NCBI GenBank assembly: GCA_905178155.1
Contig: CAJINV010000013.1
Location: 548,344 to 612,343 of the forward strand
Source: Amoebophrya sp. A120
Lineage: Eukaryota; Protista; Dinoflagellata
Length of the DNA: 64,000 nt
Direction: 5' to 3'
Positions 842 to 59,800 of the stretch are shown here, piece by piece. Below the pieces are notes generated by a model, which ran no database searches, was not told the origin of the DNA, and saw nothing but the letters and a program-made list of their open reading frames with translations. Numbering within the stretch: position 1 is the stretch's first letter; every line of letters begins with the position of its first letter. Made by a program: the position numbers and the translations under genes.

Positions 842-3800
842 ATGCCCCGAAGCCGGGACCAAGATCATGGCCAGCACCGGAGGAAAAACGACAAACATTC
901 TTCGAAACCGACCGATCAGCTGCTGCCGGACGATGTTTCTGGCCGGGATCCGTCTGCCTCGGAGAATGAGGAGGCGGTGTCGTTTTCTTTAGAAAACCTC
1001 AGAGGACCCCACCGGAACAAGCACGCGCAACCCGCCGCGGGGGCGGATTTGCCAGCGCCGAAGCAAGTCCGGTGTTGTCCGACGGACATTATTTGTTGTT
1101 TCGTGTTCCTCGCTTACGTCACGGTTTTGTTCGGGACTAGTATCTATCTTTTCGTCAATTCTTCAATAAACCAACCTCGCGACCTGGATGGCAACCCGTG
1201 CAAGATCCCGGGGGAAATCCTCTGGAACCGCTACTGCATTCCGGTATGCATTGCAAATATGTCTGGGTCTGGAAGGATGCGAACTTGTGATGCGCATTTC
1301 GCAACACGCACAAATCTCTCATGCAGAGGCAGCAAAAACAGCCACTTCCTGTCACCAAAATGGGTTACTTGTCATGCGGATTAGGCAAGCCGGAAGCTTC
1401 TCGAAATCTGTCATGCTAGGGCTTTCATGACAGATGTTCTGTGTCATGCAAAAACAGCATGACAAAAATCTGCATTCTTCCAGACCCAGACATTTTTGCA
1501 GTTGATATCCGGACCCGACACACAAAATAAAGCCCACGAACTACAAACGAGGACCTCTGCTCCCAGCCGTAACAGAACCAGAGGTGGACGATGACGACAC
1601 CAGCGCGACGAGCAACAGCGGTGATAAAGTCATCGAGAAGTGCCCCCGGTGGCACCCCGGGCCCGCGATGCAGACCCAGCAGGTGCAGCGGCGGAAGAAG
1701 GACAAGCGGACGGGGAAGCTGGTCGACTTGCCCAAGCGGTGGCTGCCGGTGGACTTCGCGTCGCGGTACGTGCCGACGCTGAATCGGTGTGTGCGGTACA
1801 AGGTTCAAAGCACCAAGTACTGCATGCCCAGGGACACCATGTGCTTTGGACTCACTACGAAAGCGAGAAACAACGCGGCCATGCGAACCGCGATGCAATT
1901 GCTGTTGAGCGACACAATTGTACGAAAAGCAGTAGAACATACTGACCACGAAAATCGTCGTGAAAACAACGACCACGACCAAGGCTTCCTCCGGCTGCAG
2001 CAACAAAACATGAATGAGCAAAAATTTATTTCTAACCAAACGCAACAGTCCGCCGCTAGTACTTCTATAACCGGCGCTACCAGTACCACCATCAACGAGT
2101 CCGCGGACGGCCTGTCCCTCTGGCAGCGGGTCTTTCACAAGCGGAACGACCAGTCTGCCAGCTTGACTCCGCAGCAAATCGCGCCGGAGGTGGATCAGTT
2201 TGACTTCAGCACGTTCACCAACGATGAGAACAACCTGGAGTTTCGTGGGTGCTGTCCCGAGCAGGTGGCCGCGGCGTTTCCGAAGCTATCCACGCGGGAG
2301 AAGCTCTTCCTGAACAACGACGTCGACTGTTACTACACTGACGCCTACGGCCAGTTCCTACCCTTTAACGACGCGACAAGGTCGAAGTTGGTGGAGAACT
2401 ACGAACAGACGATCGCGGACAGTGCGACGGCGAAATCGAAGAACAATCGGATCTATGCATTGTAAATATGTCTGAGGCTGGAAGACTGCCAGGTTTGTAC
2501 ATGCATATTTTGCATGACCCATGACGCCTGTAATGCATGGCCTAGCATCACAGATTTCTAGACAGCATCCTGATGCCTATTTCGCATGACAAATACTCTC
2601 TCTGCGTAGCAAAAATTGCCTTCCCTTTGCTGCTCATGCAACACAGATTTTTTTGGATTCCAAATGCAGCATCACAAGTTACATTCTTCCAGACCCAGAC
2701 ATATTTGCATTTGATAGGATCACCCAGATTCTCTGGCTCGTGAACAACAAGCAGATGATATCCTGTGTAAAAACGTCCCCACACCATAGTTGTCATGCAA
2801 CTCTGCATGCTTAAAATGTTTCTCATGCGGGGCCCCATGAGAAGCATTTTCTAATGGTGTTTTGAAATTTGTCATGCTCCAATCAGCTGACGAGAGCGTG
2901 TGTGTGTGTGTGAGGAGGATAGTTTGGAGTGCCAGGTCCGTTGGGCCCGGGGTGGCGGCGTCTTTGGGTTGATCAACTCACCCGAAACACAATGCCATTC
3001 CGCAGTAGCACAGTCTGTTTATGTCATGCTCCAATCAGCATGGAGACTAGATCTGTAATGCTGCTGAACTAGCTCAAACAGCACTACACTACGCGTCCAA
3101 ATTTGTCATGCCAAACAGACAAAGCTTGTGGATTTGTCTAGCCGATTCCCCATCTTGACTATGGGGTGGGTACGTTTTTACATAGGATAGATGATGAATT
3201 ACCAAAATTTATACGAGGATGCGGTGAAAGAGGAAGAGCAAAGTCAAAACCCGCAAAACAGCTACCCGAACCGGCAGTCCAGCCCGGCTTTTTTCCAGAG
3301 CAATTTCGCCCAGGACGCCCTGAACGCCTTTCGCTCGCAGCAACTCGTCTTGAAACTGGAACGGCCGATCCTGAACCCCTCCACGACCACCGCCGATGAT
3401 CTGTGGTCGCGGACCGAAAAGCAGTCCTCCGCCCACTTCACGAAGTCGCTGCGGTCGAAGTTTTGCGCGTCCGAGTACTATATCAAATGTAGAAATGTCT
3501 GGGTCTGGAAGAATTCACGTTTGTCATGCTTGTCTGGCATGACTCTTAAATCTGTCATGCACGTTACCCAAGCGCTCCGTTTTTCTGTGATGCATAAGCG
3601 CAGTTTGTCATGCAGAATAGGCAACACCTAGGAGCTCAGAAACTTGTCATGCTGAGCCAGCATTTGTAGCCTCATCATGAGACGCAACCCAGCATCACAA
3701 GTTTCCAGACCCAGACATTTTTACATTTGATATACTACGACGACGCGAACTCCAGCCAGGCGGAGGAAGAGAACGAGATCAACGGCCTGCTGGCCAAATA

Positions 3801-5567
3801 CGGGTTCCAGATCTACGACCTGGTGCGACTGGAGTGGAAGCTGGTGCTGCTGTTCGGGATTTTCTTGCCGATTTTGTTCGGGTTTGTGGCCATCTACCTG
3901 ATCCCGTACTGCATGAAGTTGCTTACCTGGCTCATCTACATCGTGGCCTTCACGACGATCATTCTCGGGAACTTTCTGCTGCTGATCAAATCCGGCTGGC
4001 TTCCGGAGTTTCTCCTGAACGAACTGGACGACGAGGGGCCCTGCGACTTCATCCCCACGGTGTTCTTGTACCACCCCAGCGAAGCCGCGGGCTACCGCAA
4101 ATGGTCGGTCTTGGCCCTGATCGGCGGTTCCGTGTTGCTGCTGCTGCTGGTGTTGCTGAAGAGACGAATCGATTTGGGGCTGAAATTACTGCAGACCACC
4201 GGGACCATCATTTTGCAACTGCCCGGAATCCTGTGGTTCGGCGTGTTGGGCATCGCGCAGACCATCGCGATCCTGTTGGTGCTCGGGATTCCGCTCTACC
4301 TCGCGTACCAAACCACCCCCGACGAGATCAAATCCATCGCGATTGTCCAGACGATCTGCGGCGACTCGTTCGGAAAGGAGTTGCTCGGGGAGGACACGAC
4401 GACGTGCTGTGAGTCGTTGAACTGGATCTACTTTTGCTTCATGCTCTTCGGCTTCGTTTGGTTCTTGCTGTATTCCTTCGCGGTGATGGAAACCTGCACC
4501 GCGATGTGCGTGTCCAAGTGGTACTTCGAGCGGCACGACCCGAAGTCCATGTTCTACGATTTGGAGCACGACCGGGCCTGTTTCCGACCCATCTGGTTGA
4601 TTGCCGTGGTGCTGGGGAAGCATACAGGTAGGTCATCATGTGGGGGGATAGGATTTTGCGGATTTCATCATCATCTCAGGAAATCGAAATATTTTTCTGC
4701 TTGTACTATCAGAATGAAAACCAAACCTAGCAATTCTACGAAGATGGAGCAGTATCAACCTAGTCGAAGATGATGAATAAAACGCTAGTACGTCATTGTT
4801 CCTCCGATCATTCACACCAAGGTACCTGCGCGTTCGGTTCGTTCCTGCTCGCGGTTTGTTGGACCCTGCAGATCCTGTACGCCGTTCTGGAGTGGGCCAA
4901 GCAAAAAGCGAAGAAAACGGTGAGTAGCACGGCCCGGCCGCTGACCGGGACGACGTCGGGCAGCGGGGAATCTTCCTCGAGCTCCTGCTGCTCGTGCTGC
5001 TCGTTAGAAAAGATTCTTCTTGCCATCAACTACGCCATCATGTACATCTGCGGGCAAGCGTTCGTGTTCGTCGCGATCGAGGGCTGCAACTTCTGCAAGT
5101 CCGCGATGAAGGTGACGAAGCTGATGCTGAAACACCCGGTGCAGTGCGCCATGAATTTGTTTCTGACCCGGATCGTCTCCGGGTTGCTGCTCCTCCTCGT
5201 GCCGCTCTCGATCGCGTTGCTGACCTTTTTGACGCACAACGTGGGGCTGTTTCAGCTGTTCGCGAACGGGTTCAGTGGGAAGAACAGCTGCTCCAAAATC
5301 GCGGCGAATGGGGTGTACAACAAGTTTCTCGCGTTTCAGGAGGAGGGAATCAGCCTCCCCATGTTCTGCTGCATTTTGTCCGTTTTCCTCATGTTCACGC
5401 TGTGCAAGACGTACAGCACCGCGGTGGACGCGCTGTACATTTGCATTTACCGAGATCTCGACTCCTTCGACGGCCGGTACCTGAACAACTCACCGGAATT
5501 GCACTCGCTTTGGAAGAAAAGTGGCAAGGAAAGCGGTGGTAAGCACTCGTCGGAAGAGGAGGAGTAG
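842..5567 (+). CDS. Choline transporter-like (CTL/SLC44/Pns1 family) membrane protein; exons about 842-1244, 1513-2453, 2722-2758, 3195-3480, 3738-4627, 4822-5567
   Basis: N-terminal RCCPTDIICCFVFLAY, multiple TM segments, KHTGTCAFGS (HxGSxAFGS-like), A..FVAIEGCNFCKSA and AVDALYICIYRD motifs typical of CTL. Frames join after removing four introners and one GT-AG intron (4628-4821). Confidence 0.85.
1245..1507. mobile_element. Introner family A (263 bp), TSD tccgg
   Basis: tccgg|TATgcattgcaaatatgtctgggtctggaag ... cttccagacccagacatttttgcagttgATA|tccgg; excision gives YCIP-DPTHK in frame. Confidence 0.93.
2454..2716. mobile_element. Introner family A (263 bp), TSD ggatc
   Basis: Same TIR core; ggatc on both sides; excision gives NRI-TQILW. 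Confidence 0.93.
2759..3189. mobile_element. Introner family B (431 bp including nested insert), TSD gatga
   Basis: TATcctgtgtaaaaacgtccccacaccatag ... ctatggggtgggtacgtttttacataggATA; excision gives KQM-MNYQ. Confidence 0.93.
2888..3021 (-). mobile_element. 134-bp SINE-like or truncated retro-insert nested in the introner
   Basis: Flanked by 18-bp direct repeat tgtcatgctccaatcagc (2870-2887, 3022-3039); (TG)n near the left end; removing it returns the host to 279 bp versus 280 bp for other family B copies. Confidence 0.75.
3481..3732. mobile_element. Introner family A (252 bp), TSD tacta
   Basis: TIRs as family A; near reverse-complement copy of 59252-59503; excision gives EY-YDDAN. Confidence 0.95.
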
Positions 5568-6852
5568 GATGAAATATGTTCTTCAGGGTTTTCAAGAACA
5601 ACATGTAGGAATAGGGAATGATTTGGGTGTGCTGGCTCCCCCAGAATGAACTCACGAAGTATGCAGAAAAAGAACAAAAATGCATTTATTGAAGATCTTT
5701 CACAACATGCAGAAATTTGAGTTTCGGATTAAATACTCGTATTCCACCGTTTCTGCCATGGTGTATCCAACTTACTAGTCTGAGAAAATAATCCACAATA
5801 TAGTACCAATTCAAATTTTCGATGGTGTTTACCGAGTTTCGAGTTGAAGAAAATTTACCTTCTGATTTCTTTGTGGCTAGAACATTTCTTCGAGTGCTAG
5901 GAAGTTGAGTTTTGTAGTGTCGACACCTTCTGCGAAAAGTATCTAATGTAAGTAAGTAGTTAGATAGTACTACTGTGTCAAATCGAAATCACGTTGAGAA
6001 CAAAGAGAAACCACCAGACCACAATTTTGTATGGGGACTACAACATAATATGATCCCAGATTGAGAAACACCACCATGCTTGAAGAAACCGAAAATCAGG
6101 TACACCTGAGTGTGTTTCTACTTGAAGAGACAGCTTGCCTCACCCTCTCAGGAGTTGCCTGCAGCCTGAAGCATCGTTTTCTTTTTTGAAGTTGCGCATG
6201 AAAATTTCTTTTAGCGAGAGCTTCCTGCACTTGCTTATTATACTGCCAGAAGAGTGGAAAAGTGAGCGGCTGGGACGGGATAATAGAACCAAAGGAGGCG
6301 AAGTTTTACGGAGGCACCAGTGGAGAGTACAAACACAGTAGAACTGTTTTTGGCAAGTGCCAGGCATGATAGATAGTCTCCGACTGACAGATTTGCTAGA
6401 GATTTCATCGTCATTCTGAGAGGGGAGAACAACACTCTCTTCTCTCTGCTCTTGTTATCCTCAGACTTTTATTTACAATCCCAAATGACTCTTTTATTAT
6501 GAGATGTCAAATGCGGCGTCTGCTGTCCCTGTCTCAGTCACTTACCTAGGGCACATGAAGACATAGGCTACTTCGATTGATTGTCGTCTGTAGCTTTGGA
6601 CGGGCGCGGACTCGGAAATTCTAAATTATGTGACTCTTTTCAACCGCTACACGGCACAAAGTTTGTCGTGGGGGGCGTGCGGTAGTATGCACTAGTACCT
6701 TTGACCTAAATGGTAGTGTAGCGCCCGGCGGCCGCAAGGGTGTTTCGCGAGACCCGGACTCCATCTCGCGGGTTTTCCATTCGGGACCAGCTGCGTGAGA
6801 TTCGAATAATTTCTCCTCGCGTTGGAAGACCAATTCTACCACGTTCACCACG

Positions 6853-9800
6853 ATGCTGCGGCGCAGTCTCGTGTTCTCTACCACATCCACCAGTGCGACG
6901 CTGGCGTTGCAGCAAAGTTCCAAGAATAGAAACGAGTACGCAATACCGCTGGAGTCCTCGGGGCAAATCGACTTGGGAGACCAGGAACGCAGGGACGATG
7001 AAGATTCCACACGGCCGCCAGGGAGCGCTTTGATGAAGGAAAAACAGAAAGTGTTTGAAGGCGGCACGACGAGGACAGCAGATAGAAGGTCCTCGTCTTC
7101 GAGTTCCTCTTCGACCACTACTAAAAGTGATCCAACTTCTGCGCAAGCGGATTTGAGGACAGGCGAGGCACAGACAGGAAAAGGCACTGCTGCTTCGAAA
7201 GCATCCTCTGTAGTCACCACCAGCAAAAGCTCCAAAACGTCCAAAAATAAGCGGAAGGAGCGACGCCAAGAGGCCGTAGATGCGGGGAAGAAATCAATTC
7301 CAAAAAAGAAAATGATGCACGACGAAGTACTCGTGGATCCGGATGCGAGTACGTCTTTAGACGACACAATCTCGGCGGATGATGCAGAAGAAGGTTTGGC
7401 GGCTACAGCAAGAAGAAGTGTTGAGCAAGTGAAGAAAGATGATATCGCTAATATCGCACAGCAGGAAGGTAGAACCAAGAATCATCACCAGGTCGAGGAC
7501 ACGATAATTCCCCTCCAGGGAGACGAGGGAGACCAGGTCCATCATCCGGAAGCCGGTCTGCTCGACTCCAACTCCGGAACTTCAGGGAAGCTGCAAGCTG
7601 CGACCCAGCTGAAACACACGGTCCGGTCCAGGGTCGCTTCCACCATGCACGAATCCCTCGCGAAAGCCGGGAGCGAAGCCTGGTCCGCCACCTGGCACTA
7701 CACGGTGAAATTCGACCGCCCCAACGCCGACCACGCCGGCGGGGTGCTGTTCGTCGCCGGTCTCCTTCGGGACGAGGATTTTCTGCGGGAGTTGCAGGAG
7801 CAGCTCGGGGCGGACACCACGCTGGCCACCGAGCAACCGGCCATCATCGAGGCCGAGGCGATTGAGGCCGAGGAAGCCTGCGAACTGTCCATCAAGTTGG
7901 CCGCCGCGGAGGCGGCCGAGGCCGCGCAGAAGGACCCGCTCCCGCTGGAAGCGCAGATCTTGGTGATCGTGCTGTGCCTTTTTCAAATGGTTCTGACCGT
8001 CCACGTTTTGATCACCAGCGACTTGCCGCCCCTGGAGCCGGAACCCGTCTACGAGCCGGAAAAGGAAGAAGTCAAGCTACGGGACGAAAGGCGGAGGCAA
8101 ATGCTGGTCGGAGATGTCATGCTGTTACTTGTGTATATTATAATAGATAGGCAGACTACAGGGGTGGAGTTTGTTTCTGTTACTGTTTCTGTATATTTCC
8201 GCACTTCATGCTGTTTCACCATGGTGGAGCACAGAAATGGTCAGCATGACACGAGCACGACCCATTTTTCTAGTTCATACGCTGTCGAAGTCAAAGCTCC
8301 GGGCCCAGCGATCGACCTATCGAAAGTCCCCGGAAAGAAAGCGGAGGGGGAGGCGGAAGGTTCAATGACTCAGTTTGAGTTTTTCTTGCGAGGACGCGAC
8401 CATCCAGCACGATGACTATAGGATAGATACTGAGACTCTTCTAAATTCATGCTTATCTGCTTACCTGGCACTTACTCTTTATTTCGGCTTTCATCAAATC
8501 AAGTCGCGCACGAAACAAACAACAAACAGCTCCCGAGGCACCGGTGATCCAGGGTTCGGGCGCAGCGTTCAGCGGCGCTGGATCCTCTGCGGTTGGCGGG
8601 TCGTCCGCTTTCGGTGGCGGCTCCTCTGCGATGGGTGGCGGTTCTTCTGCCTTTGGCGGGGGATCGTCCGCAATGGGCGGGGGTTCGGCGGCATTTGGAG
8701 GAGGTATTATTTAACAATATGTTCTTCCTGCAGTACAAACGCAGTTCTTGCAGAAAACGAAACCCTTTATCACCCGATCCTGATTTTTTCTGACTCTGGA
8801 ATCTTGAAATGCATCTACATTTGGATTTTCTCTGTGCAGGCACAGACCAATATGTCTGAACATAATTACAGGCTCTTCTGCTATGGGCAAAGGTTCAGCT
8901 GCTTTCGGCGGAGGAAGTTCGGCGTTTGGCGGCGGCAGCTCCGCAATGGGCGGCGGTAGTTCGGCAATGGGCGGCGGCTCTTCGGCTTTCGGTGGCGGGT
9001 CATCAGCTATGGGCGGCGGTTCGTCAGCTATGGGCGGCGGATCTGCAGCTTTCGGCGGCGGCAGTTCGGCGATGGGAGGCGGATCTGCAGCATTCGGCGG
9101 CGGCAGTTCGGCGATGGGTGGCGGTTCATCCGCGATGGGAGGCGGGTCCGCGGCGTTTGGAGGCGGCAGCTCCGCAATGGGAGGCGGGTCCGCGGCGTTT
9201 GGAGGCGGCAGCTCCGCAATGGGAGGCGGGTCCGCGGCGTTTGGAGGCGGCAGCTCCGCAATGGGAGGTGGCTCCGCGGCGTTTGGCGGAGGGTCCTCTG
9301 CCATGGGAGGCGGATCTGCGGCATTTGGCGGTGGCTCTGCAGCTATGGGCGGCGGCTCCTCTGCCATGGGTGGCGGCTCCGCAGCCTTCGGTGGTGGTTC
9401 TGCAGCACTCGGAGGCGGCTCAGCAGCAATGGGTGGTGGGTCAGCCGCTTTTGGTGGGGGCTCAGCTGCTATGGGCGGCGGATCAGCTGCTCTGGGCGGC
9501 GGTTCGATGATGGGTGGTAAGTCCACATAGAAAAATCACTTTTGTGTTTGTCATCCTGATGGATCATGTCGCTGATTCATCCTGAAGTGCGAATGATCGA
9601 GGCACCCAAAACTAGTTTTGAAAGTAGTTGTAGAAAACGAAGAAAAAGATTCACGTTATTGCCGCAAACCAAAAAATAACCCAGGCGGATCTGCAGCTCT
9701 CGGAGGCGGTTCTGCAGCTCTCGGAGGCGGCTCGATGGCGGTGGGCGGCAAGAAAGCGGGTGGCGGTCTTGGTGGCGGTTCCATGGCCATGGGCGGTGGC

Positions 9801-10984
9801 GGTTCGATGGCAGTGGGCGGCGGCTCCATGGCCGTTGGCGGGGGCAGTATGGCCGTCGGCGGAAAGAAGGCCGGCGGCGGCTTGGGAGGCGGCTCCATGG
9901 CGATGGGCGGCGGCGGCTCCATGGCGGTTGGTGGCGGGAGTATGGCAGTTGGAGGAGGCTCGATGGCCGTCGGCGGCAAAAAAGCGGCAGGCGGCGGTGG
10001 AATCGGGGGCGGGTCAATGGCCATGGGCGGTGGCGGCTCGATGGCAGTGGGCGGTACTTACAGCAATCATTGCACGCAGAACTGCAGCTTTCATGTACAT
10101 TATCACTCTTCACAGTCGACCGCACTGCAAACAAGCTACTGCTGAAATTAATCGCTCGCTCTTGTTCCCATTTTCCATCGTAGGTGCGGAAGATAATGTC
10201 ATATGCTACAAAAAAACAGGTGGCTCCATGGCTGTCGGCGGTGGCAGCATGGCAGTTGGAGGCGGAAAAGCTGCGGGAGGCGGAATCGGAGGTAAATCCA
10301 AATTGCCACATCTTCACACAGCATGCTGCACTTCTTGTCGCTGCTGCAGTCGTGCAGCTTGTAAATGCTTCATTTTTGATGCAGTTGACCTATTTGTCAA
10401 GCGAAGGACGACAGTTGTGAGTGTGGTGTAACATGCATAATTGCAACGAGTTTCTTTTTTCCCTCTAGTAACCCCGTCAGTTGGGTAGATTGATCATTCT
10501 TTCACTCACCAAATCCCTGAAATACTCCATTATCTCAGGCGGGTCCATGGCCATGGGCGGCGGTTCAATGGCGGTCGGAGGCGGATCTATGGCAGTGGGC
10601 GGCGGTAAAGCGGGGGGCGGAATCGGGGGTGGCAGCATGGCCATGGGCGGCGGAGGAAGCATGGCCGTGGGCGGCGGTAGCATGGCCGTCGGCGGTGGCA
10701 GCATGGCTATCGGTATTGGCTTTTTTGCCCATAATTGTCTGCGGTTCGCTATGCAGGCCATGATAGGGCATGGATTCTTGTAGATAGGTCGCAACTAATT
10801 CTACTTACTTCCATGATAGTTTCACATGATTTGACATGCATTTGCATGCACAAGAACCATCGAACCATAATTATGCGTGATTTACAAATACTTACACAAA
10901 TCATGCACAGGTGGTGGCAGCATGGCGATCGACCCGAAGGCAAAGGCAAAGCCTAAGGGCTCCCCGGCGCCCTCCCCGAGGTAG
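6853..10984 (+). CDS. Hypothetical single-pass membrane protein with Gly/Ser/Ala/Met/Phe heptad-repeat tail (paralog 1)
   Basis: ORF from 6853 with AWSATWHYTVKFDRPN domain and a TM segment. GT-AG introns 8360-8529, 8704-8871, 9517-9684, 10054-10219, 10292-10538, 10713-10910 join the GGGSxAx exons; stop TAG 10982-10984. Probable in-frame intron about 8078-8284. Start codon uncertain. Confidence 0.75.
8078..8279. mobile_element. Degenerate in-frame introner candidate
   Basis: AT-rich block ending ATA; inverted repeat tgtcatgctg (8115-8124) / cagcatgaca (8242-8251) extends imperfectly outward; 202+5=207 nt keeps frame; TSD not preserved. Confidence 0.45.
8560..10930 (+). repeat. Coding 21-bp (7-aa) repeat arrays GGGS(S/A)A(M/F) and GGGSMA(V/M)
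   Basis: Direct translation of exons; synonymous variation between units. Confidence 0.9.
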
Positions 10985-11856: not shown

Positions 11857-14800
11857 ATGGTGTGGCCCTTCACGTCAACGGCACTCCTGCCTGCTGGGTT
11901 AATCTTGCGTGGCGGATGTATTAGCAGTCCAGTTTTGCACGTGGTGCTCGCAGTGCAGCAGCGGCCAGCGGCCACTCCGTCTACCGCACCACCGGAGGGA
12001 GACACAGTCTCATCAAGGACGGAACACGTTGCAGTCCCTCTGGAGCCGGGCGGGCAAATCGGGGAAGAAGAAGAATTTCCACACAAGGTACTAGAGGTGG
12101 ATGACGAGGCAGCGTCACCGTCTAGAAACACCATCACGTCCTGGGGCGCAGCAGAGTTTTCCTATTTCGGCGGAACGGCCGATCGGTACAGCGAGAGCCG
12201 AAATTATGAGCTGAGTAACGCACAAGTGTACCGGAGAGAAAGATCGAAAAAGTACTCATCGCTTCGTCTACCCGCACTGAACAGGCCGGCGGATCATTCT
12301 GTGAGGCAGGAAAGAGCACATCAAGGCGCTGGACGAACAAATGGAAAGCAGCACCATTATCGTCCACGGGCCGCGCAAGAGGACGTGAAGATGAGACCAC
12401 ACAGAGGTAGTACTAGGGCGGCAACAAGACCTTCTACTCAGCACGTCAGGACTGCGAGAAAACGGGAAATTGGTGAAACTCGAACGGCGGGGGCTGCATC
12501 CTCTTCGGCCGATGCGCTTCTAGAACTTAACGCAGGCGCGACGGGCGGATTCGAAATAGATGAAGCAGCTCTCGACCACGTCGATGAACAACAAATGGCC
12601 AACGACGTGGAAATTATCCTTGAAAGGGAACTTGCAAGAACCGGACCTGTCCCGAAACCCTACAGCAAGCGCCGGCTCGCCGCCGCCCTGGTACAGAAAT
12701 CGATGGAGGAGGCGGACGCGAGGGCTTGGTTCGCGACCTGGCACTACACAGTAAAGTTCGACCGACCGAATGTGGATCACGGCGGCGGCTTATGATACTG
12801 AAAAGTGGTGCATCTTACAAGTTGAGCCATCAGAGCACTTCGTAGAATTTGTGTTGCAAAGCTTCCCTCCGGACACGTTCGCCATCACCTTGCATGTGCC
12901 CGATGAAAGTAAACAATTCTTGAATTTGCGTCGCAAAAAGGTCGAGCAAAAGGGGGGCTTGTTCTCATGTCCGGTGAAGCGCTTTTCGTGGTCAGAGTCC
13001 GGGTGGAGAGTTGGAAGAGAGTTGGAAGCCTCGCAGTTCTTTCATTGAAAGACCTGCGAGAGGAAGCTTTTTCTCTCAATTTGAATCAAATTGAAAGAAA
13101 AGCTTGCTTTATTCTATATGATGAAACCACCAAAAAAAAGTTTGCATGAGAAATATTCACCACTTCTGGTAATGGTGCACTTGTTTTCAATTTCAAACGG
13201 CGTGCGGCACGTCGCCAAGCTGTTGCGCGACGCGGAATTCGTCCGTGAATTGAATGAGTTTCTGCAGCACGGTGGTACCCAGCTCCAGAAAAACACGCTG
13301 CAGTATCCTGTCGTGTGAAAACGTACCCTCCTGAAAGTCGAGATGTGAAGACTTCTGCTTATTGCACAAGTGAAGAAGGTCTTTTGGCGGTTGTCTATGC
13401 CGCAATGTCGTTCTGGCAAGCTAGAACACCAGCCACGTCTTCTTGAACAATCCACCTTGTAAACCTGGTTTGAGCATGGGAAACGAAACTTGCAGAGAAC
13501 CTGTGGTCATTGTTCGGGAGATGCAAGAACATCAGAGATATCATAAGTAGCTAAACGTAGACTTCCATCCACATGTGTGGAATCTGGTTTGGGTATGTTT
13601 TCGTTATGGATGTGCAGCCAACGATAATCGAGACGGAGGCGATCGAAAAGGAAGAGAGGTGCGAGAAGGATATCAAAGCGGAGGCCGCGAAAGCATACGA
13701 CTTCGCACAACTCGACCCGCTGCCACTTGGACTACAGCAGGCGGTGATTGTCATGTGCGGTTTGACCATGCTGATGGTGCTTTTCGTCTTGATCACCTCC
13801 GATCTGCCCCCCGTGGCCCCCGTTCCGCCGGAGCTGGAGCGAACCTTCGACGCCGCGCTGGCGGAGCAGAAGGCGGCGCTGGTTGGGGAAGCAAAGGCCG
13901 ACGCGAAGGTGTAACCAGTGGAAAAACGACGTCCCCTTTGACAAACACGTCCCCTTTGACCCACAGTCAGGGTGGCAGATTTGCTACACAAGCCCAGAAG
14001 TGTTGGCTGTTCATCCGCATGACTGCAGCTTTGGGCCTCCAGTGCAGGCGTGGTTGAGTAGCTTGCGCAGTCGCGTTGCAACGGGAGTTCCTTATCGTGA
14101 TTCGAGCATGTTGACAAATTCCCGGATAACTACCTTAAAAAATGCTGCTCATCATAAAGCTCCTGCAAACGAGACACAATGTGATGGACATCGACATCCC
14201 GACTCTTGCATGATCGAAAGAAATTTGGGGTGGGGACGAGGTTTTTCCGCAGGAAAAGGCGAAGGCGATCGCCATCAAGAAGGGCGCGATGATCGACTTG
14301 ACCAAAGTGCCAAAGGCGAAAGCCCGGGCCGAAGGCGAGGCGGTGGCGGAAGCGCCGGTGCCCCGCGAGCTCGCGGACGTGGGGAAGAGGCAGCAAGCGC
14401 AGATCGGCCCCGGCGGGTCGTCCATGTTCGGCGGCGTCCAGTCCTCTGCGGGGGCCTCCAGCGCGTTTGGCGCCGGTGGCTCGATGGCGTCATCCTCAGC
14501 GATGGGATCGTCGGCCATGGCAGGGTCGTCCGCCCTCGGTGGCAGCGCGGGTTTTGGCGCCGGATCGAAGTCTATCAGAGTGCACAACTTCTACCCGTCC
14601 TCCCTCCGTTTGGCAGGAACAGCAAAAATACAAGCGTCGGAAAGTGAGTGCAGGTTTTGTATGTAGTGAGGTCACGAACGTTCTAATCTAGCGATCTTTT
14701 TGACAGCTCTCATGCAAAACGATTGGAAGTTTCCAAGCGGCCGGAGGTGTTTTTGAACATAAAAGATTTTCAATTATCAAGGAGCGGGAATTCTGATCAC

Positions 14801-38732: not shown

Positions 38733-38749
38733 AGCCATTTTGGCTCAAG
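38733..38749 (+). other. Relic of dinoflagellate spliced leader (AGCCATTTTGGCTCAAG)
   Basis: Exact match to the last 17 nt of DinoSL DCCGTAGCCATTTTGGCTCAAG; not followed by GT, so not an SL RNA gene. Confidence 0.88.
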
Positions 38750-45900: not shown

Positions 45901-46059
45901 GTTGATGGGGGACAAGAACAGCCTGCGGTTCGAAGATTTTCTGTCTCGGATAAAATCAGATACGGGGTGACCCGGAGTAAAGAGGCTTGCTTTGGCTTTT
46001 GGAACGTCAACAGCACCGGGGCGTTCCGCGTTGTGGACAAAAAGTCTTGGGAAACATAG
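39972..46059 (+). CDS. Secreted-type multidomain protein: PAN/apple-like Cys modules plus C-terminal sulfotransferase; exons about 39972-40862, 41185-44250, 44536-46059
   Basis: Signal peptide MIRLFAATSFLALLF; CxxxC..CxxYT modules; DFLIAGFARSGSTT (5'-PSB) and LIFVIREPMEWLQS (3'-PB). Confidence 0.8.
40863..41179. mobile_element. Introner family D (317 bp), TSD acacg
   Basis: TATcaaaaggaaaaatcccccctccc / gggagggggatttttcctttcgATA; excision gives HT-DNYY. Confidence 0.95.
44251..44530. mobile_element. Introner family E (280 bp), TSD ccatt/ccagt
   Basis: TATcagagtgcacaa / ttgtgtactctcgtcATA; excision keeps frame and removes the stop at 44479-44481. Confidence 0.88.
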
Positions 46060-47141
46060 AGCTTGGTCCTCTGTCTTGGTGGAGGAAGTTTTCGCAAAGA
46101 CATCCTCAAGTTCAAGTTTTGGGTGGAGGAAGTTTTCGCACGAAGTTCAAGTTCTGGGCGAGATGCCGGTGCTTAGAAGTATGACATGAAAATAAAGGCG
46201 GTGGAGCGAGATGAATCTACGTTAAGAAATTGATCATATGCAAATGAACCAAATCTATATCTAACGATCACATGCACACCGTCATCAACGTGTGTCTTTC
46301 TCTCTTCTACAACTCACGGAAGATGAAGAAGCAATGAAATTCCCATTTGAATCGACTTAAGTAGCGCAAAAGTGAAGTAAAGTACTCTCAGCATGAATTC
46401 TTTGGAAAATGACGCGATATAGTAGTGCGAAAATATGAAGAAGAAGATTCAGAAGCCAAAAAAAAGCTGCAAGATGAGATGAAGGCGATCAAGATCTGTT
46501 CGAGAAAATTTGGTTTGAAACCCCGTCAAGCAAGAGATGCCACAATTGCAATCATGATCTCTTTTTGGTCAATGAGAACGATCGATCCCAATGCTTCGTA
46601 GCGCACAGGTTTTGAATCGAGGTCAGAATCAAGCTGGTCATTTAACGAAATTCAGAACGAAATTTTCATTTGCCAGTTTTCAAAATTTTTTCTCAGGTCC
46701 CATTATTTTGTAAATAAAAATAATGGTTGATTTGAAGTAGTCCTCCGTATTTGATGTACCCATATTTTTTTCTTAGCTCAAGCCGGCATGATATCCCTAG
46801 CCTTTTCTGAAAATGGTCTTTCCGTTTTGTGAGCGATGCGCCACTGAATAAAGCTTCAGCATCTTTTCGAACCGCGACTCTCTCTAGGCACAAGACATCA
46901 AGAAACGTCCAAACAAAGAATTTTTGTTTCGTTTCCTTTCTGAAAAGTTTCACAACAACTACGCTTTAATTCCTTACGCGCGTTCTATCAGTTATTTCAC
47001 AACTAAAAGTTGAGCAATTTTCCTTTTCCCAAACTATTATACCATCTACCTTCTTCTACATTATCCTAGAAGAAATTTCTCCTCCACTACAAGACTGAAA
47101 CCCACCCTACTAATAATCAAATTCTCTAGAAAATAATCAAA

Positions 47142-49742
47142 ATGGCGGCCACCACGGATCAGCTTGCCATCACGGACAGCAACATGCTGATGCAGGTGGC
47201 GCTCCGCGAAAACAGCTCGACCGCGATCGAGTCCGCCGACAAGGTCCGCAAGTCCCGTTTCGCCCCCATTGACCGGACGCTCTCCGCGCAGCAGACCCGG
47301 TGGGGCGCGGACGACGACAAGCCGTACAAGCCGCTGCCGTACATAGACATGCCGGTGGGGCTGTCGGACCAAGAAATGGATCAGTTTCTCCGGGAGCGCC
47401 GGCTGGAGGAGCTCACGAAGAACATCCGGGGCAACGTATCAAAAGGAAAAATTCCCCCACCCCATACTCAAAGGGAGATTTGTATAGCATGATTTGTGAT
47501 CACAAATCGCGTTGTCATGCTAGAAGGGAAGAGATGCAGATTTTAGTGCTGGCTGGCGTGGGAAAGCTTTGCGTCTTCAGCATGACAGGAAGCAACTGGA
47601 AACGGGAAACAGCATGACAAATTTCCTGCAAACGAAGGAACAGTTGCGTCTTTTGGCCTTCTAGCAATACAAGTTGATTTATGGTCACAAATCAGCATCA
47701 CAAATTTCCTTTTTGATATGGGGAGGGGGGATTTTTCGTTTTGATACAACGTGCTGGAGGACGTGGACCCGGACATCCGGCCACCCAGCCCCCCGCCGGT
47801 GTACGACCGGAACGGGAACCGCATCAACAGCCGGGAGACCAGAATCCGGAAGCAGATGCTGAACGAGCAGAACCGGCTCGTGCGGTACATGATGAAACAC
47901 GTGCCCGGCTACGTCGCACCCACGGACTTCCGCCCGCAGAAGCTGGCGAAGAAGCTGATCCTGCCGCTGGAAAAGTACCCCAACGCGCCCTTCGTGCAGG
48001 TCATCATCGGCGCGCGGGGGGCCAACCACAAGAAGCTGCAGGAGCTCACCGGGTGCCGGATCATGATCCGCGGCAAGGGCATGGACGAGAAGCAGAAGTA
48101 CCAAACGGACGAGGACGCGGAACTGCCCCAGCACGTGCACATCGAGGCGGACCACGAGGAGCAGATCGCCATGGCCGAGACGTTAATCAAACCCTTGCTG
48201 AACCCGGAGACCAAGGAGTTCGTGGAGGCACAGGAGCTGGGGCTGCAGGTGCTGGCCAAACAGAACGGGTTCACGGTGGCGTTGCACGAGAAGCGGTGCG
48301 GGATCTGCCAGGCCATTGGGCACACGTCGGACCAGTGTCCGGAAGCGGACGGGTCCGGGTGGAAGATGGCGGAGGTGCGGTGCGCGATCTGTGGCGACCG
48401 GGGGCACCCGACCAGCGACTGCCCCATGAAGATCTCGGAGGGAATCCAGGAAAACATCAACTGGAAGGCGGAGGCCGCGAAGAAAATGGAGGCGGACAAG
48501 CTGTACGCAGAGATGATGCAGGAATTCAAAACCCCGATGGATTTCGACAGCATCGATTCCGCGAAGCAGAGGGAAAAGGACTTTTTGAACAAAGCGAGAC
48601 CGGGCTTGGGATTTTCATCATCTGCTGGGAACAATAAGGATCCAATTTGCACCGAGGTTGGCGGCGGAGTTAGTACTACCGCGGCAAGTGGTGCAGCAAC
48701 GACGTCCGGGGTTGCAGGGGTCACGACCAGTAAAGCGGGGGCTTTTGTGACAGCAAGCAGCGCGAATACGTCCTGTGGTGGGACCGCTGCGGGGGGTCCT
48801 AGCGACTACAATAATGATGGGCGACAAGGAGTTCCGCCAGCGTCTGGTAATATTTCTGCGAACGGGGGCACATCAACCTCTTCCGCGAGTAATGTCGCCG
48901 GATTCAATGCCCCGCCCGCCGCGAAACACGCTCCGCAACAGATCAATGGAACAGCGACAGCAGGAGCGAATGGTGCCGACTCCGGCGCAGAAGCAGGAGC
49001 AACGTCATCAGGCCCGCACTTAACGACGCTTTCCACGCACACGGACTACGCAATGGACACGTCCCTCACGATACGGAAGGACCTGTGCAGTTTTTTCATC
49101 GGTGCGAAGGGCGCGAACATTCACGCACTGAAGCGGGAGGCGGGTTGCGAAATCAATCTGGAGCGGGCGGACAATCCCGACGGGACGAAAACCATAAAGA
49201 TTTCCGGCAACACCGAGCAGCGGGAGAAGGCAAAACAGCTCGTGCTCACGGCCATTGAGGACGCGAAACAGGCCCAGCAGGTGATGGCGAAACGGAAGGA
49301 AATGTCGATGGGCATCGACAGGGGCTGGTCTGGTTCTGGTGGGGAGAAAGGCAGTAGCTCCTCCTGGTCGTCGAACAAGGACCACGGCGAGTTCGGCAAG
49401 GGGAAAGGGAAAATGAACAGCTTCGGAGGTGGGGGCAAAAACAGCTGGTACAATCACCGAAACAACAAGGGCGGCGGGTCGAATCCGTACGGGAATTTGC
49501 CGGGCGGCGGCTTCGGCGGCATGCCGGGGGCCTTGCCCGCGTTTGCGTTCGGGCAACAGCAGCAGATGCAGTACCAGCAGATGCAGATGCAGCAGCAGAT
49601 GATGTACCAAATGCAGATGAATGCCATGTACGGCCAGCAACAGGCTGCGGCCGCAAACATGCAGCAGGGCATGCAGGGGCAGCAGCAGATGGGGCAACAG
49701 CAACAGCAACTGCCTGGGAACAATAACAGTGCTGCTGGGTGA
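47142..49742 (+). CDS. SF1: Splicing factor 1 / branchpoint-binding protein with an extra C-terminal KH domain; exons 47142-47436, 47752-49742
   Basis: TRWG (ULM-like), RPPSPPPVYDRNGNRINSRE, KH IIGARG..IRGKG, QUA2-like LAKQNG, two CCHC knuckles, second KH FIGAKGANI, Q-rich tail. Confidence 0.93.
47437..47746. mobile_element. Introner family D (310 bp), TSD caacg
   Basis: TIRs and body homologous to 40863; excision gives GN-VLED. Confidence 0.95.
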
Positions 49743-53872: not shown

Positions 53873-56800
53873 ATGCCGATGTTTAAACAAATGCTGTTTG
53901 GCAGCGGGGACGAGCACCAGAGCCCAAACACGGACGACAACGAGCTGACCAACGAAGACATTTTAAAGAACCTCCTGGAGGAGAAGGAAACGGAGATTAA
54001 GGACTTGAGGCATCGCGTGCAGGCCCTCATGGATGCCATGCACAAAGATTCCCCGCGTGGGGAAGGGAAGACCGACGGTGGAGCCACCGATTTTCTCACG
54101 GAAAACGTGGCGCTGAGGTACTAAAAAGTGTACTCTAGTAGCGTTTAAAAGTTCTTGCATAGTATCTTTCGGCAACATTGACGAAACGAATGAAATGTGA
54201 TGTGCGATGTTTTGTACTGTAATTCTTGGCCTGTTGCTTATTTGACTGCCTATGGCGCTGGCGCACTCGCACACGATACTTACGAGGCACGAAGACCATT
54301 TTCACGCATGCGTCACGTCAACCAAAACAGGGAAGCCCTGGCGCAGGCCCAACAGCAACTTTCTGAGGTTGTCATGGGGACAAGCGATAGGAGCGCCCCC
54401 GGAGTGGACAATAGTGAGGCGATGAAGCAGGTCACATACTGGAAGGGAAAATGGGAAGAGAAGGAACAAGAGGTACTTACGTAAATTTCTACATGCTGTT
54501 TCTTGATCACGACAGTAACACTTTCACTCCTGCGGCTGCTGTGTTTTAACTCTTTTTGCTTTAAGTATACTTACTCGAAACTCGAATACCGACCCAGGGG
54601 TAGTTGTTTCTATCAGTCCCGTTATCTTCGAAAAACATAAAAAACCATCAGAACGTCCGCCTTCTGTCCGAGAATACGGATTTCCAGGCCCAAATTCAAT
54701 CCCTTCAAGCAGAAAACGCCCAGCTTCGCGACTCCGAGCAACGGGCAGTTGCAGCGCTTGAAGCGGCCCAAGCCGCGGCTGCGACTGCAGCCGTTGCCGT
54801 GCCGGACAGGGCAGAGGTTCCCACCGTAACAAGTGCGGCCGCTCCTTCCAAGAAGCAAGATGACAATGACGTGGACGGCTGGGGCGATATTGACGATGAC
54901 GAAGATTTGCTCGCAGCAGCAGCGACCGAGAGCGACATCAACAAGAAGCATTTTCAAGCAGCGCTCGGGAAGGAGCCGAAAAACGCGGCCGACATCCGTT
55001 CCGAGGAAATCGAGAAGTTGACCGCGCAACTGGACATCCGCTCCGCCGAAGCCGTATGCATTGCAAAAGTATCGTACTCGTAGAAATGCATGACAAATTT
55101 CCTTAGCATGAGAAATAAAATTTGTAATGCTGATTTACCTGATCCTGAACAAAAAGATTTGTAATGCCTGATTGCAATACGAGTACGATACTTTTGCACA
55201 GGATAAGCCGAGGAGCTGCGGATCGCTGCCTCGAACTTTCTGGAACAGATATCAAATGCAAAAATGTCTGGGTCTGGAAGATTGCAACTTCAACTTGTCA
55301 TGCTAAATTTGCAGCATGCAAAAATCTGTGTTGCATGATTACCAAAAGTCGCCCAGTTTTCTTTGACCAAGTCGGGAGGTAGTTTCTCATGCAGGATAGG
55401 CATTAATAAGGTCTCGCAGAGTCTGTCATGCTAGGTCCTGCATTCCAGACCTCATGGGTCATGACAAGTCTCGAATCCTTCCAGACCCAGACATTTTTAC
55501 AGTTGATAACAAAAGAGGGACTACGAAAGCACGATCAGCGATCTGCAGCGGAAGCTGCAGGGCGATGGGGCGCAGAAGCAGGAGATCGCGAACCTGCAGA
55601 GCAACGTGGAACTGCTAGAGTTGGAAAACGGTAATTTGAACAAAGAGAACACAGAGCTACGAAAAGAGGTGAAACGACTGGAAAGCGAACAGAAGGAGGT
55701 TGGTGGTCGTGTTGTAGCAGCAGCGGCCACGACGACCGCAGCCACCGTTAATGTAGTTCCACCTGCACACCAGCCCCCAGTTCCGCGCAAGGATTTGTAC
55801 GTTGCCAAAACCGCGATTGAGCTGGACCAGTTTTCGATGGAGGAACTCCGGGAAGAGTTCGAGGAAGTGCAGGAGATTCTGGAGATTGAGCAGGGCGCGA
55901 CCGACAAACTCCGGGCGGAAATCGCGGATCTGCAAAACCGGCTTGTGGTTCTCGCAGCTGCTCCTTCGACGACCGCCGCGACTAGTTCTTCCAGCCCCTC
56001 GAAGTCCTCGAATATATCCGGCGGTGGAAATACCAGTAACAACGCGAGCGGTTTATCCTTTGCGCAGGAAATGGAGATGCAAAAGTTAAAATCGGATTTG
56101 ACGGAGGAGAAAAAGAAGAACACCGAGTTGATCCGACAACTGAATCTGCTCGAAGAGGAGGTGGAAAAGAGGGCGCAGGAGGTCCGGAGCCTGTCCAAAA
56201 GCAACCCGCCGAGTCCGAGCCACGCGACGGGAGGCGTTGCAAATGGTGCAACTTCGTCCACCGACCAAGTTTCGACCACAGGAGCAGGTGCAAACGCGAA
56301 GCAGCCACGGGTGTCCGAGGATGGCTGGGGCGACGATGCCTGGGGAGATGATGACGATGAAGACGCTTGGGGGGACGACAATGTCGACGTAGCTCCGGTT
56401 GTAGCAGGTGCGGGTTCATCTTCGGGCGCAAAACCTGCTGCAACTGTGCCAGCAGCACACGACCAGGAGCCAGCTGCCGCAATACAAAACCCGAATGATC
56501 TTCCTGTAACGTCGTCGATGCAACAAGCGTCAGACGGCGATGGTTGGGGTGACGATGACGACGCGTTTCCCTTCGAAGACGAGGACAAAACGGCCAAGGC
56601 GGTGCTGGAGACCTTCAACATTGCGAGTCCGGAGGAGGGTAACACGCCGTTGGGAAGTGCGACGGGTGCGGACGTGGGCAAAATGCTGGCCGGAATGGTG
56701 AAGGTGGAGGAGCTGCAGGTCGTGCAGCTGGATTTGGAAGAGCAAAGGAGACTCGTGAGCCATTTGAACATCGAATTGGAAAAAGCGATGCAGGAGGTAT

Positions 56801-59800
56801 AGGGTTTTTAGAATGGTTTTCATTTTCCTCGCTTTCTTTCATCTGTTACTGTTTCCAGTATGCATAGAAACATTCCCGAAGCTCGCATCTATAGCTGTTT
56901 GTCGGTCGAGTCCGTGATGAAGATGTGGCATGAAGTACTTACTTCTTAGTTGCGAAAAAAACGAAATCAACCTCCCACCAGGTCCGCAAACAGGAGCAGA
57001 GCCAACAAGCCGCCACCACCTCTCTTGCCCGGGTCGAGCAGTTGGAGATCGAACTGAAGGACAAAATCTTCAACTTCGACAGATTGGAGAAGGAAAACAG
57101 CGCCCTCGTCGAGCAGAACACGTCCATGACGCAGAACATGGATGCGCTGGCCTTGAAATTCGAAGAATTGCAGCGGGAGAACGAGAGTTTGACGCAGGAA
57201 AAGCTCGCGATGAACCAGCAGAGCATACCGATGGAAACGTCGCAGATTTCGGAAGCCTCCTCGGTGCAGGACCTGACGCAGGAGAAGGACAAATTAATGG
57301 ACACGCTCACAAGGATAACAACCGAACTTGCCGAGAAGGAAAACGTGATCGCCAAGCAGGAAAGTGATGGGAAATTGGCGGAAGAGGTACGAGGTTTGGT
57401 GATTGTGTTTGATGAAAAAGAATGAGGTTGTCTTTATGTTTTGTTTCACATTTCCTTGCTTGCCCTTCCAACCCCAAGTCGCGATTGAAATTGCTACATG
57501 ACAAAAACACTTCAAACATCATTCCATGCCTTAGGCCCTCGCCCTGAAAACCGCGGAAGTCGACAAGCTCAAATCGGAGCAAGACGCGTCGAAGCAGGCG
57601 TTTGACCTCGAGTTGGACGCCTTGCGAGAGACGAACGGCCTACTGGAAACCCGGATCGAGCAGCTGCGGCAGGATTTGGAAAAGGAACACAAGCAGGCAC
57701 AAGAGGTGATAAGTGTCGCTGCCGTGAATGCGAACGCATCTAGCACTACAGGTGGTACGGTGAATGCAGTCGAGGTTCCGGTTGAAGTCGAACCAGTGAA
57801 GAACATGGCCGGTGCAGATGCAAAAGATCCATGGGCCGATGTGGAGGACGATGACGGGTGGGATTTCGGGGACGATTCCCCGAAGGAGCAAGCACCGAAA
57901 AAAACACTTGAAGGCTCAGTTCCGACTGCCGCAGCTGTGGTGCAGCCCCCTGATCAAACGGAAGAGGTGGAATCTTTATCCCAAGCTTCCGCTTCTGCTG
58001 CTCTACTCCAGCAGAATCACGACAAGCTAGCGAAGCAGGTTGACGAACTTGTCGCAGAAAAGACTGAGCTCTTGGCGCAGCAGGCGACGCTTTCTTCCCA
58101 GCTTGAACAGCTAAAGGACGAGAGGGGAGAGATTTTCCAAGAAAAAGAAAGGATAACTGAAGAGAATATCGAGTTTAACAACAAGCTGTCCACGCTCGAA
58201 ATGACGGTGCGCGAACAGCAAGAGAAACTTCGCCTGTTGCAAGAAGAGAAATCTTCGTCATTACAAGCGGGACCACCACCAGCCGCTGCAGCAAGCCCCG
58301 AGACAAGCACAAGCACTACGTCCGCACCTCCTGCTCCAGAACCGAAAAGCGCTACAGTGCCCGAACCTGCACTAGAAGTAGATGATGACGGTTGGGATTT
58401 CGATGACGAGTCACCAGCGAAGACTGGCTCAGCAGGAGGAGAGCTACTACCCCAAGAGGGGGCTCCTGCTGTTCCTGTTGCACCAGCAGTGGCAACTACA
58501 AGCTCAGCATCCTCCAAGGTACCGCAAGACCCTCTTTCCGTTTCAGTTGAATCCCGGCAGCCGTCGAAGATCCGGTTATCAGAGGACTCCACGCTCGACT
58601 GGAACGAGAAGGCGCCTACACCCGCGAAATTAGAGGCGAAATTGAGAGAGACGGAAATGCGGTATGAGGAATTGCGGGGAAAATTCTCGGACTGTGAGAA
58701 GGAGTTTTTGGAGAGTTCTTCTCAGAAAGATAAGCTCCTCGCGGAGAAGACGGAAGAGGTATTGGAGAAGGAGCAGGAGCTGCGGAAATTGGAAAAATTA
58801 TTGCTAGAACAAAAGGAAGAACAAGTGGCTAGCGAGAGGGCAAATCAGGCCAAGGCGAGCGAGGAGCGTGCAGCCGCTGTCGCGGAGAATTGTGCAGAGT
58901 TGGAGAAAAGATTCGCAAGCGAAAAGGACAAATTGCTAGACGAGAAAAATTTGGAAATTTCGGCGAAAATCGAAGAAGCGAAAGTCCTGAACAGTCTGCT
59001 ACAGGAGAAGGAGGAGCAGTTGGCTGTTCTGGCGAGCAAGCAGGATGCGAACGCCGCGGAGCAGCAGACTGCGCTTGCTGCCTCCACTGCGGAACTCGGG
59101 GCGAAAACGGAGGAGGCGAAGGAACTAGCGGCTTTGCTGAAAGAAAAGGAGGAGGCGCTAGCACTCGCACAGATGCAAGTCGCTGACGCAGCGACTGCGA
59201 ATGGCGCAAGTCTTGCGGAGAAAGACGCTGAGATCGCAGAGAAGGACAGTGTATCAAATGTAAAAATGTCTGGGTCTGGAAACTTGTGATGCTGGGTGGC
59301 GTCTCATGATGAGGCCACAAATGCTGGCGCAGCATCACAAGTTTCTGAGCTTCTAGGTGTTGCCTATTCTGCATGACAAACTGCGTTTCTGCATCACAGA
59401 AAAGCGAAGCTCTTGGGTAACGTGCGTGACAGATTTAAGAGTCATGCCAGACAAGCATGACAAACGTGCATTCTTCCAGACCCAGACATTTTTACATTTG
59501 ATACACTGAGATCGCGGAGAAAATCGAAACGATGAAGCAACTCTCGGAGCAGCTGCAGACGCTGGGAGAGGAGCTAACAACGGCGAAAAAACAAGTGGAA
59601 GCGTTCGCTGCGGAAAAACAGTCCGCTTCTGCGGAAAAGGACGAAGAATTGACGCAGAGAATCGAGGAGGCGAAGCAGCTTTCGCAACTGCTGCAGGAGA
59701 AGGAGGAGGAACTTGCAATGGCCAGCATGCAAGCGGACGACAGCGAGGCGGTGCGGGAGAATTTGCGTGAAAAGGAACAAGAGCTGGCAAAGAAAACTGA

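Follow-up and report, generated by a model that had tools for sequence, protein, structure and literature searches.

TAT...ATA transposon-like insertions with 5-bp target duplications in exons of Amoebophrya sp. A120, and their absence from RNA

The window analysed here is a 64 kb stretch of the genome of Amoebophrya sp. A120 (contig CAJINV010000013.1), in which almost all long open frames lie on the + strand. Its protein-coding exons are interrupted by inserted elements that begin with TAT and end with ATA, carry terminal inverted repeats (TIRs) and are flanked by a 5-bp target-site duplication (TSD); the elements stay in the DNA and are missing from RNA without the use of GT-AG borders. When the whole window was scanned for TIR-bearing stretches with TAT...ATA ends and an exact 5-bp repeat on either side, ten elements were returned, and two more have one mismatch in the repeat, giving 12 strong elements; ten shuffles of the window gave none. 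Looser scans, which required the joining of two open frames, added five elements (14573-19559, 29961-30192, 32488-32834, 44251-44530 and 13304-13612), and a scan for the end motif a further one (13912-14256). The window therefore holds about 18 elements, 12 strong and six weaker (Table 1). The TIR cores named in the original prediction, which had been made from the sequence of the window, were recovered where it had placed them and far above chance (10 matches against 0.3 expected for one core, and 7 against 0.2 for another). It had counted about 20 transposon-introns in at least six families; the number found is close to this, and the families recognised are at least five (A, B, D, E and F) plus singletons. 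Local alignment scores range from 40 to 220 within families and from 9 to 20 between families, with a shuffled maximum of 11, indicating that the five or more distinct families and the singletons are real.

Removal of the 12 strong elements, each with one copy of its TSD, rebuilds open frames of 933, 989, 1466, 765, 592 and >2069 codons, as the original prediction had proposed. The 933-codon frame spans four elements, the 989-codon frame three and the 592-codon frame two. Every register that would give an identical product was listed for each element, and in 17 of them (0/17) no register allowed by the duplication provides GT-AG, GC-AG or AT-AC, so the canonical borders of U2- and U12-type introns are not found. 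The lack of a GT-AG register, which had been claimed for most of the elements, has a single exception, 13912-14256, where the AGGTG target supplies one (13909-14258). To judge by its sequence, this element may be an introner (an intron-creating transposon) turning into, or passing as, a canonical intron. An ordinary GT-AG intron at 4626-4819 (+) lies in the same gene as the elements at 1245-3732 and serves as an internal control. Two apparently ordinary GT-AG introns (56797-56981 and 57388-57534) were also seen in a long coiled-coil gene that carries family F and family A elements. The element class and GT-AG introns coexist in one transcript of the first gene, and likewise in the coiled-coil gene.

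Table 1. Inserted elements of the 64 kb window, in order of position (TSD, target-site duplication; TIR, terminal inverted repeat; LINE, long interspersed nuclear element; P0001 and P0002, annotated proteins described in the text).
Element	Position	Length (nt)	Duplication and other features	Evidence or remark
Family A	1245-1507	263	TSD TCCGG	Absent from RNA contig; DNA contigs span both borders
Family A	2454-2716	263	TSD GGATC; inverted relative to the 1245 copy	Absent from RNA contig
Family B	2759-3189	431	TSD GATGA	Removed precisely in RNA contig
Family A	3481-3732	252	TSD TACTA	Absent from RNA contig
B-like, degenerate	13304-13612		Ends TAT..ATG; TSD TGCAG	Removal joins open frames of 74 and 98 codons
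Degenerate	13912-14256		Ends TAA..AAA; TSD AGGTG/AGGCG	End score 14.5; coordinates read from sequence
Family E	14573-19559	4987	TSD AAGTC; LINE inside	Joins frames of 120 and 156 codons
Singleton	29961-30192	232	TSD GGTCA/AGTCA	Skipped by annotated protein P0002
Singleton	32488-32834	347	Weak TIR; TSD CCTGG/CTTGG	Joins frames of 197 and 248 codons; weakest member
Family A	33390-33682	293	TSD GTTTC	Strong scan, frame restoration
Family B	35579-35858	280	TSD CTCTC; inverted relative to the 2759 B copy	Strong scan, frame restoration
Family B	35920-36199	280	TSD CGCGC	Strong scan, frame restoration
Family D	40863-41179	317	TSD ACACG	Skipped by annotated protein P0001
Family E	44251-44530	280	Imperfect TSD CCATT/CCAGT	Skipped by annotated protein P0001
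Family D	47437-47746	310	TSD CAACG	Within SF1/BBP-like splicing-factor gene; frame restoration
Family F	55055-55205	151	TSD AGCCG	Strong scan, frame restoration
Family A	55250-55508	259	Imperfect TSD ACAGA/ACAAA	Strong scan, frame restoration
Family A	59252-59503	252	Flanks CAGTG/CACTG	Strong scan, frame restoration

Sequencing reads and contigs were compared with positions 600-5700 of the window. A contig of 3875 nt was assembled from run X3, the RNA status of which is a guess only (its sampled-word share, 0.69, is roughly that expected from an estimated exonic fraction of about 0.73). It aligns to 748-1239, 1508-2448, 3189-3475, 3733-4625 and 4820-5700, and lacks all four elements between 1245 and 3732, one TSD copy with each, as well as the GT-AG intron 4626-4819. 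Since the ordinary intron is missing, the contig must derive from processed RNA. Between elements 2454-2716 and 2759-3189 a 42-nt micro-exon is expected, which includes one TSD copy; the contig has 36 unlisted bases at this place, between the pieces ending at 2448 and starting at 3189, which fits precise removal. Contigs of a DNA-like run (X1) span the exon-element borders (600-1268, 1482-2529, 3162-3509 and 3709-5700) and keep the GT-AG intron. Further along the window, exon queries matched two proteins (P0001 and P0002) at 100% identity, each recorded as 'unnamed protein product [Amoebophrya sp. A120]'. P0001 maps to 39879-40862, 41185-44250 and 44536-46056, skipping the family D and family E elements that begin at 40863 and 44251, and P0002 maps to 25496-29959 and 30197-30340, skipping the singleton 29961-30192. 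The predicted removal from RNA is thus seen for seven of the 18 elements, four being absent from the RNA contig and three from annotated proteins; for the other eleven, frame restoration is the sole evidence.

The ends and duplications were examined in an unbiased way by clustering inverted repeats in 234 kb of the genome, with the ends left unconstrained, and finding the best-fitting length of flanking direct repeat for each cluster. The distribution has its maximum at a length of 5 (23 clusters), and TAT..ATA ends are present in 20 of these 23; no other combination of ends and repeat length recurs among the TIR clusters of this 234 kb. In about 290 kb of genome, 42 elements were collected, with an exact 5-bp TSD in 33 and one mismatch in the other nine. 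Extension of the repeat to a sixth base occurs at chance rate only (6 and 8 of 33), showing that the duplication is exactly 5 bp, and the sequence of the TSD is near arbitrary. The common TAT/ATA ends and the 5-bp TSD of arbitrary sequence that had been claimed for the window are therefore upheld on the larger sample. Position counts over 34 ends give a 15-nt consensus, T-A-T-C/G-N-N-N-T/A-G-N-A-A-A-A-A, in which the first three positions are nearly invariant (T33/A34/T34), position 4 is C/G, position 9 is G in 27/34, and positions 11-15 are A in 25-30 of 34, so that the families have more in common than the TAT triplet.

The families also have an internal motif in common, GCATGACA/TGTCATGC, which is enriched 50-70-fold in the interiors of families A, B, D, E and F. 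Most elements have 2-7 copies, while A4 has one and the degenerate 13304-13612 none, and the motif is found in the fetched genomic loci L015-L032 as well. It often forms small hairpins, and its strand tracks the orientation of the element, not the direction of transcription. This strand behaviour, read from sequence, agrees better with sites bound by a protein at the DNA level (a transposase acting on subterminal repeats, for example) than with an RNA signal.

Copies were sought in the whole assembly (115.5 Mb), in which the window lies on contig 13. The family D element 40863-41179 has 2147 first-look candidates, the top 40 of which are full length and 92-95% identical, and the family A subfamily of 59252-59503 has 2191, the top 40 again full length and 96-98% identical. 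Full-length top copies at 92-98% identity point to recent activity. At locus L015, a TAT...ATA element (5233-5439) with its own TSD (ATTCT) is inserted within a family B element (5080-5570). The elements are transposon-like: they have TIRs and a TSD fixed at 5 bp, occur dispersed in thousands of near-identical copies and are found nested in one another, all of which are features of miniature inverted-repeat transposable elements (MITEs).

Both orientations of the elements are removed. The family A copies at 1245 and 2454 point in opposite directions (identity 0.74 after inversion of one of them, against 0.39 without), and the RNA contig contains neither. In family B, the copy at 2759 runs opposite to those at 35579 and 35920. 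Since copies in opposite orientation both leave the RNA, removal is independent of orientation, which argues for a symmetric signal; a hairpin fits these data better than directional splice motifs. Folded as RNA, the TIRs pair into terminal stems some 30-50 bp long, beginning at UAU, with the two TSD copies unpaired at the base. The terminal stem of 59252-59503 is about 48 bp (z = -9.1), and that of 2759-3189 also starts at UAU (z = -6.8). Whichever way an element is inserted, the conserved A-run at positions 11-15 of the ends is read near the element's 3′ end as a U-run, at a distance of 11-15 nt (10 nt clear), and this U-run resembles a polypyrimidine tract.

Because one TSD copy leaves together with the intron, a constant sequence is possible at no more than one of the two intron ends, the other being set by distance or structure. 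The imperfect TSD of 44251-44530 (CCATT/CCAGT) distinguishes the two copies, and here P0001 reads NLAI|CF, not NLAS|CF, at the junction, which means that at position 4 it is the upstream TSD copy that is retained. The 5′ cut would then fall either at the first base of the element (the first U of UAU) or one base earlier, and the 3′ cut 4-5 bases past its last. Two other elements with imperfect duplications, 29961-30192 and 32488-32834, are uninformative on register, as both TSD alternatives encode the same residue, while the two possible products of 55250-55508 differ at the junction (E or K).

Several further features of the window were observed. The family B element 2759-3189 is about 150 nt longer than its relatives, and the extra piece (2870-3039) is flanked by repeated GTCATGCTCCAATCAGC; a joint in the DNA run skips 2887-3047 within the same element. 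The family E element 14573-19559 encloses, at 14871-18716, a 1281-aa open reading frame (ORF) for a reverse transcriptase (RT; RVT_1) together with an endonuclease-like GDWNAQ motif, that is, a non-LTR (long terminal repeat) retrotransposon, which accounts for a putative intron length of 4987 nt. A possible decayed element lies at 8100-8285 within the open frame 6853-8415, with a right end at 8279 (end score 15.6) and TCATGC at 8116 and 8244; it has no recognisable left end and no matching 5-bp repeat. Glycine- and methionine-rich repeat coding (GGSMAMGG-like) at 8800-10800 and 19500-21100 is the source of numerous spurious repeats, both inverted and direct. A comparison of the whole window with Rfam found nothing. 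The gene at 47130-49739 is a homologue of SF1/branch-point-binding protein (BBP), with SF1-HH, KHDC4/BBP KH, second KH and zinc knuckle domains, and this splicing-factor gene is itself interrupted by the family D element 47437-47746.

Non-canonical introns have been described in this organism. Farhat et al. 2021 (BMC Biol 19:1, PMC7789003) reported that >60% of A120 introns are non-canonical, with RNA-seq support, and that 29,850 introns are repeated 'introner elements' in 1954 families making up 17% of the genome. Their inverted repeats start with TAT, followed by seven less-conserved bases and then at least 3 A; direct repeats of 3-5 nt occur at the borders at variable offsets, and a hairpin was suggested to join the exon boundaries. 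Neither U1 snRNA (small nuclear RNA) nor a transposase was found in A120 in that study. The elements of the window are these same objects in the same organism, sharing the TAT start, the variable bases, the A-run, the non-GT-AG borders and the border repeats. They differ from the published description in the direct repeat, given there as 3-5 nt at variable offsets and found here to be uniformly 5 bp and adjoining TAT/ATA. The main text of Farhat et al. does not mention that either orientation is removed, that an internal TGTCATGC motif is present or that the upstream copy is the one kept. Gozashti et al. 2025 (PMC12130899) count A120 as one of the introner-rich species and describe a TIR-flanked family with integrase-like ORFs that lacks the ends and duplications of Ginger. 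In a 2024 review (PMC11282704) the A120 elements are treated alongside Fritillaria non-canonical introns and euglenid nonconventional introns. The literature search turned up no later paper that resolves the mechanism of removal.

Comparison with other systems shows partial likenesses. The euglenid nonconventional introns (Milanowski, Guminska and colleagues; PMC11282704) are alike in their non-canonical borders, paired ends, TSD-like repeats and suspected MITE origin, and circular excision products have been shown there; unlike the window elements, they have CAG/CTG at +4 to +6 and much shorter pairing. The MITE introns of Fritillaria borealis (Henriet et al. 2019, cited in PMC11282704) share TIRs, non-GT-AG ends, species specificity and coexistence with older GT-AG introns; they prefer AG-AC and AG-AT and are attributed to a modified U2 spliceosome, whereas the window elements show no preference for any dinucleotide in any register. 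The introners of Micromonas, Aureococcus, Polarella and others (Gozashti 2022, 2025; Roy 2023) are likewise intron-creating transposons, often with TIRs and TSDs, but they carry or co-opt GT-AG, often by way of an AGGT target, a pattern that only 13912-14256 fits in the window. Transib transposons share the 5-bp TSD and the TIRs, but have CAC...GTG ends in place of TAT...ATA, as the original prediction had noted; the RAG1-like protein profile (PF12940) had no match in the genome, with control genomes equally silent.

The reading favoured here, which is held to be reasonably probable, is that the published A120 introner elements represent a superfamily of small non-coding MITE-like TIR transposons, removed from RNA under the guidance of a stem and spread by one DDE-type mobiliser. 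The elements have entered exons in either orientation, duplicating exactly 5 bp of target each time, and they carry the repeated internal TGTCATGC mini-hairpins. Each is lost from the RNA with exactly one TSD copy. In the pre-mRNA, pairing of the two TIRs would form a 30-50-bp stem at whose base the two TSD copies lie next to each other; the cuts would be placed by their position relative to the stem and not by end dinucleotides, and the upstream copy would be kept. The elements would spread through a single family of DDE-type cut-and-paste enzymes, with its gene or genes in another part of the genome. Such a single family is suggested by the fixed 5-bp stagger together with the common end consensus. 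The best guess for the removal machinery, offered tentatively, is a U1-independent spliceosome helped by the stem. An unlikely further proposal is that the RNA cuts are measured from the base of the stem with a 5-nt offset equal to the transposase stagger, the 5′ cut falling at the element's first base and the 3′ cut five bases past its last, by a structure-reading machinery other than the canonical spliceosome that co-evolved with an unrecognised transposase family.

A number of observations weigh against this reading. The RNA evidence consists of one assembled contig, from the run of guessed RNA status, and two raw RNA runs (X9 and X10) with the same species label placed almost nothing on the gene at 600-5700; these two runs are probably from another strain or dominated by the host. 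The pairing of TIRs is expected in any TIR transposon, so the stems are no proof of a function in RNA, and the stem mismatches (9 G.U against 7 A.C) do not point to selection at the level of the RNA strand and are uninformative. The original prediction had supposed one removal system reading the terminal hairpin; orientation-independent removal speaks for it, but the mismatch counts do not divide a hairpin reader from a relaxed spliceosome. The cut register is based on one element and on annotation, not on reads, and the known chemistry of the spliceosome does not readily accommodate introns whose two ends both carry arbitrary dinucleotides.

The failure to find a transposase also weighs against it. 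Profiles for hAT, MULE, RAG1, piggyBac, Harbinger and DDE_3 had no match in the genome, although the hAT, RAG1 (PF12940) and piggyBac profiles were silent in control genomes too, and their blanks say little. An integrase-type (rve) mobiliser was also considered and rejected: all hits examined, about a dozen of 30, are Copia or Gypsy retrotransposons, and 'rve-only' ORFs turned out to be frameshifted Copia pol genes. None of the rve loci examined is flanked by TAT TIRs. A Ginger or integrase-type transposon was set aside, as the examined rve loci carry RT or RNase H domains or LTRs, and the element ends are TAT...ATA and not TGT...ACA. The original prediction had called for a search for long TAT..ATA copies encoding a transposase. 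A scan up to 30 kb, covering the window and some 230 kb of fetched loci, found no autonomous long copy, the LINE-carrying 4987-nt element being the only long one. The 15-nt end consensus and the internal motif fit the single mobilising enzyme family that it had proposed; no transposase was found, and the family is a putative one.

In the course of the rve survey, a 7-kb Copia element was seen at locus L032 (5513-5880; genome G000, contig 2, ~4741512-4748565). It has 368-bp LTRs (TG...CA) and a 1986-aa ORF, and at least 4 copies at 98-100% identity. Beside it may be noted that the raw RNA runs X9 and X10 (2026) gave only partial matches to parts of the elements.

The alternative that survives best, although it is judged somewhat unlikely, is a non-spliceosomal one: an endonuclease would read the base of the long TIR stem and cut the RNA hairpin on both strands at a 5-nt offset, and an RNA ligase would join the exons. 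Such a route would be akin to tRNA or HAC1/XBP1 splicing, or to the removal of euglenid nonconventional introns. It would account for the absence of a constant dinucleotide at either end in any register, for the independence of orientation and for terminal stems that are very long and stable, and it has a parallel in the euglenid introns, which combine paired ends, TSD-like repeats and non-canonical borders with release as circles (PMC11282704). The failure to find U1 snRNA (Farhat 2021, PMC7789003) points in the same direction. However, nearly all spliceosomal proteins are present in A120 according to the same paper, no endonuclease or ligase for the task has been identified, and the MITE-derived introns of Fritillaria are reportedly spliced by the U2 spliceosome (PMC11282704). 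The element 13912-14256, lying in an AGGT target and offering a GT-AG register, suggests continuity between the intron classes, and the U-run 11-15 nt before the 3′ end in either orientation, with its likeness to a polypyrimidine tract, also favours the stem-assisted spliceosome over this route.

A second alternative concerns the origin of the elements, namely that several unrelated transposases, or selection by the removal system, gave rise to the same TAT...ATA and 5-bp appearance by convergence. This is considered improbable. The families have no internal similarity beyond short motifs, the six profiles found no transposase, and Gozashti 2025 (PMC12130899) assigns A120 introners to several transposon classes, all of which would agree with convergence; yet the length of a TSD is set by the inserting enzyme and not by splicing, 5 bp is essentially the sole TSD length associated with TIRs in the 234 kb examined, and the 15-nt end consensus and the TGTCATGC motif are common to families A, B, D, E and F.

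Excision at the DNA level is very improbable indeed: the RNA would then be copied from cleaned DNA in transcribed nuclei, and loss of an element with one TSD copy is indeed the product of excision of ciliate internal eliminated sequences (IESs), while the DNA run showed many joints in a repeat-rich stretch (the listing of which is partial), but the DNA contigs span the element-exon borders at normal depth, the element-free contig also lacks the GT-AG intron and hence derives from RNA, and no precise-excision joint is among the DNA-run joints listed, bearing in mind that rare excised DNA could escape a comparison at the contig level. The likeness extends to the TA-bounded IESs of Paramecium, which are transposon-derived insertions in coding sequence removed precisely with one target copy; ciliate IESs are removed from DNA by a domesticated transposase, whereas the window elements stay in DNA and are missing only from RNA. 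No germline/soma split is known in this organism.

The phenomenon and the hairpin hypothesis had already been published for A120 (Farhat 2021), and the interpretation favoured here, stem-guided removal of MITE-like elements, essentially restates that proposal, the TAT start of the repeats included. The additions made here are small and incremental, consisting of the exact 5-bp TSD, the independence of orientation within one transcript, the common internal motif and one data point on the cut register. Elements with imperfect TSDs have also been identified as sites at which ordinary RNA-seq reads could fix the cuts to the nucleotide. The underlying biology is an important problem. If removal does read structure with a 5-nt offset, it would represent a new class of nuclear pre-mRNA splicing, one that erases its own transposon scar exactly. 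Such elements account for the majority of introns in an abundant marine parasite and violate the near-universal GT-AG rule, and the way in which they are removed and spread bears on the origin of introns and on the extent to which splicing can deviate from its canonical form.

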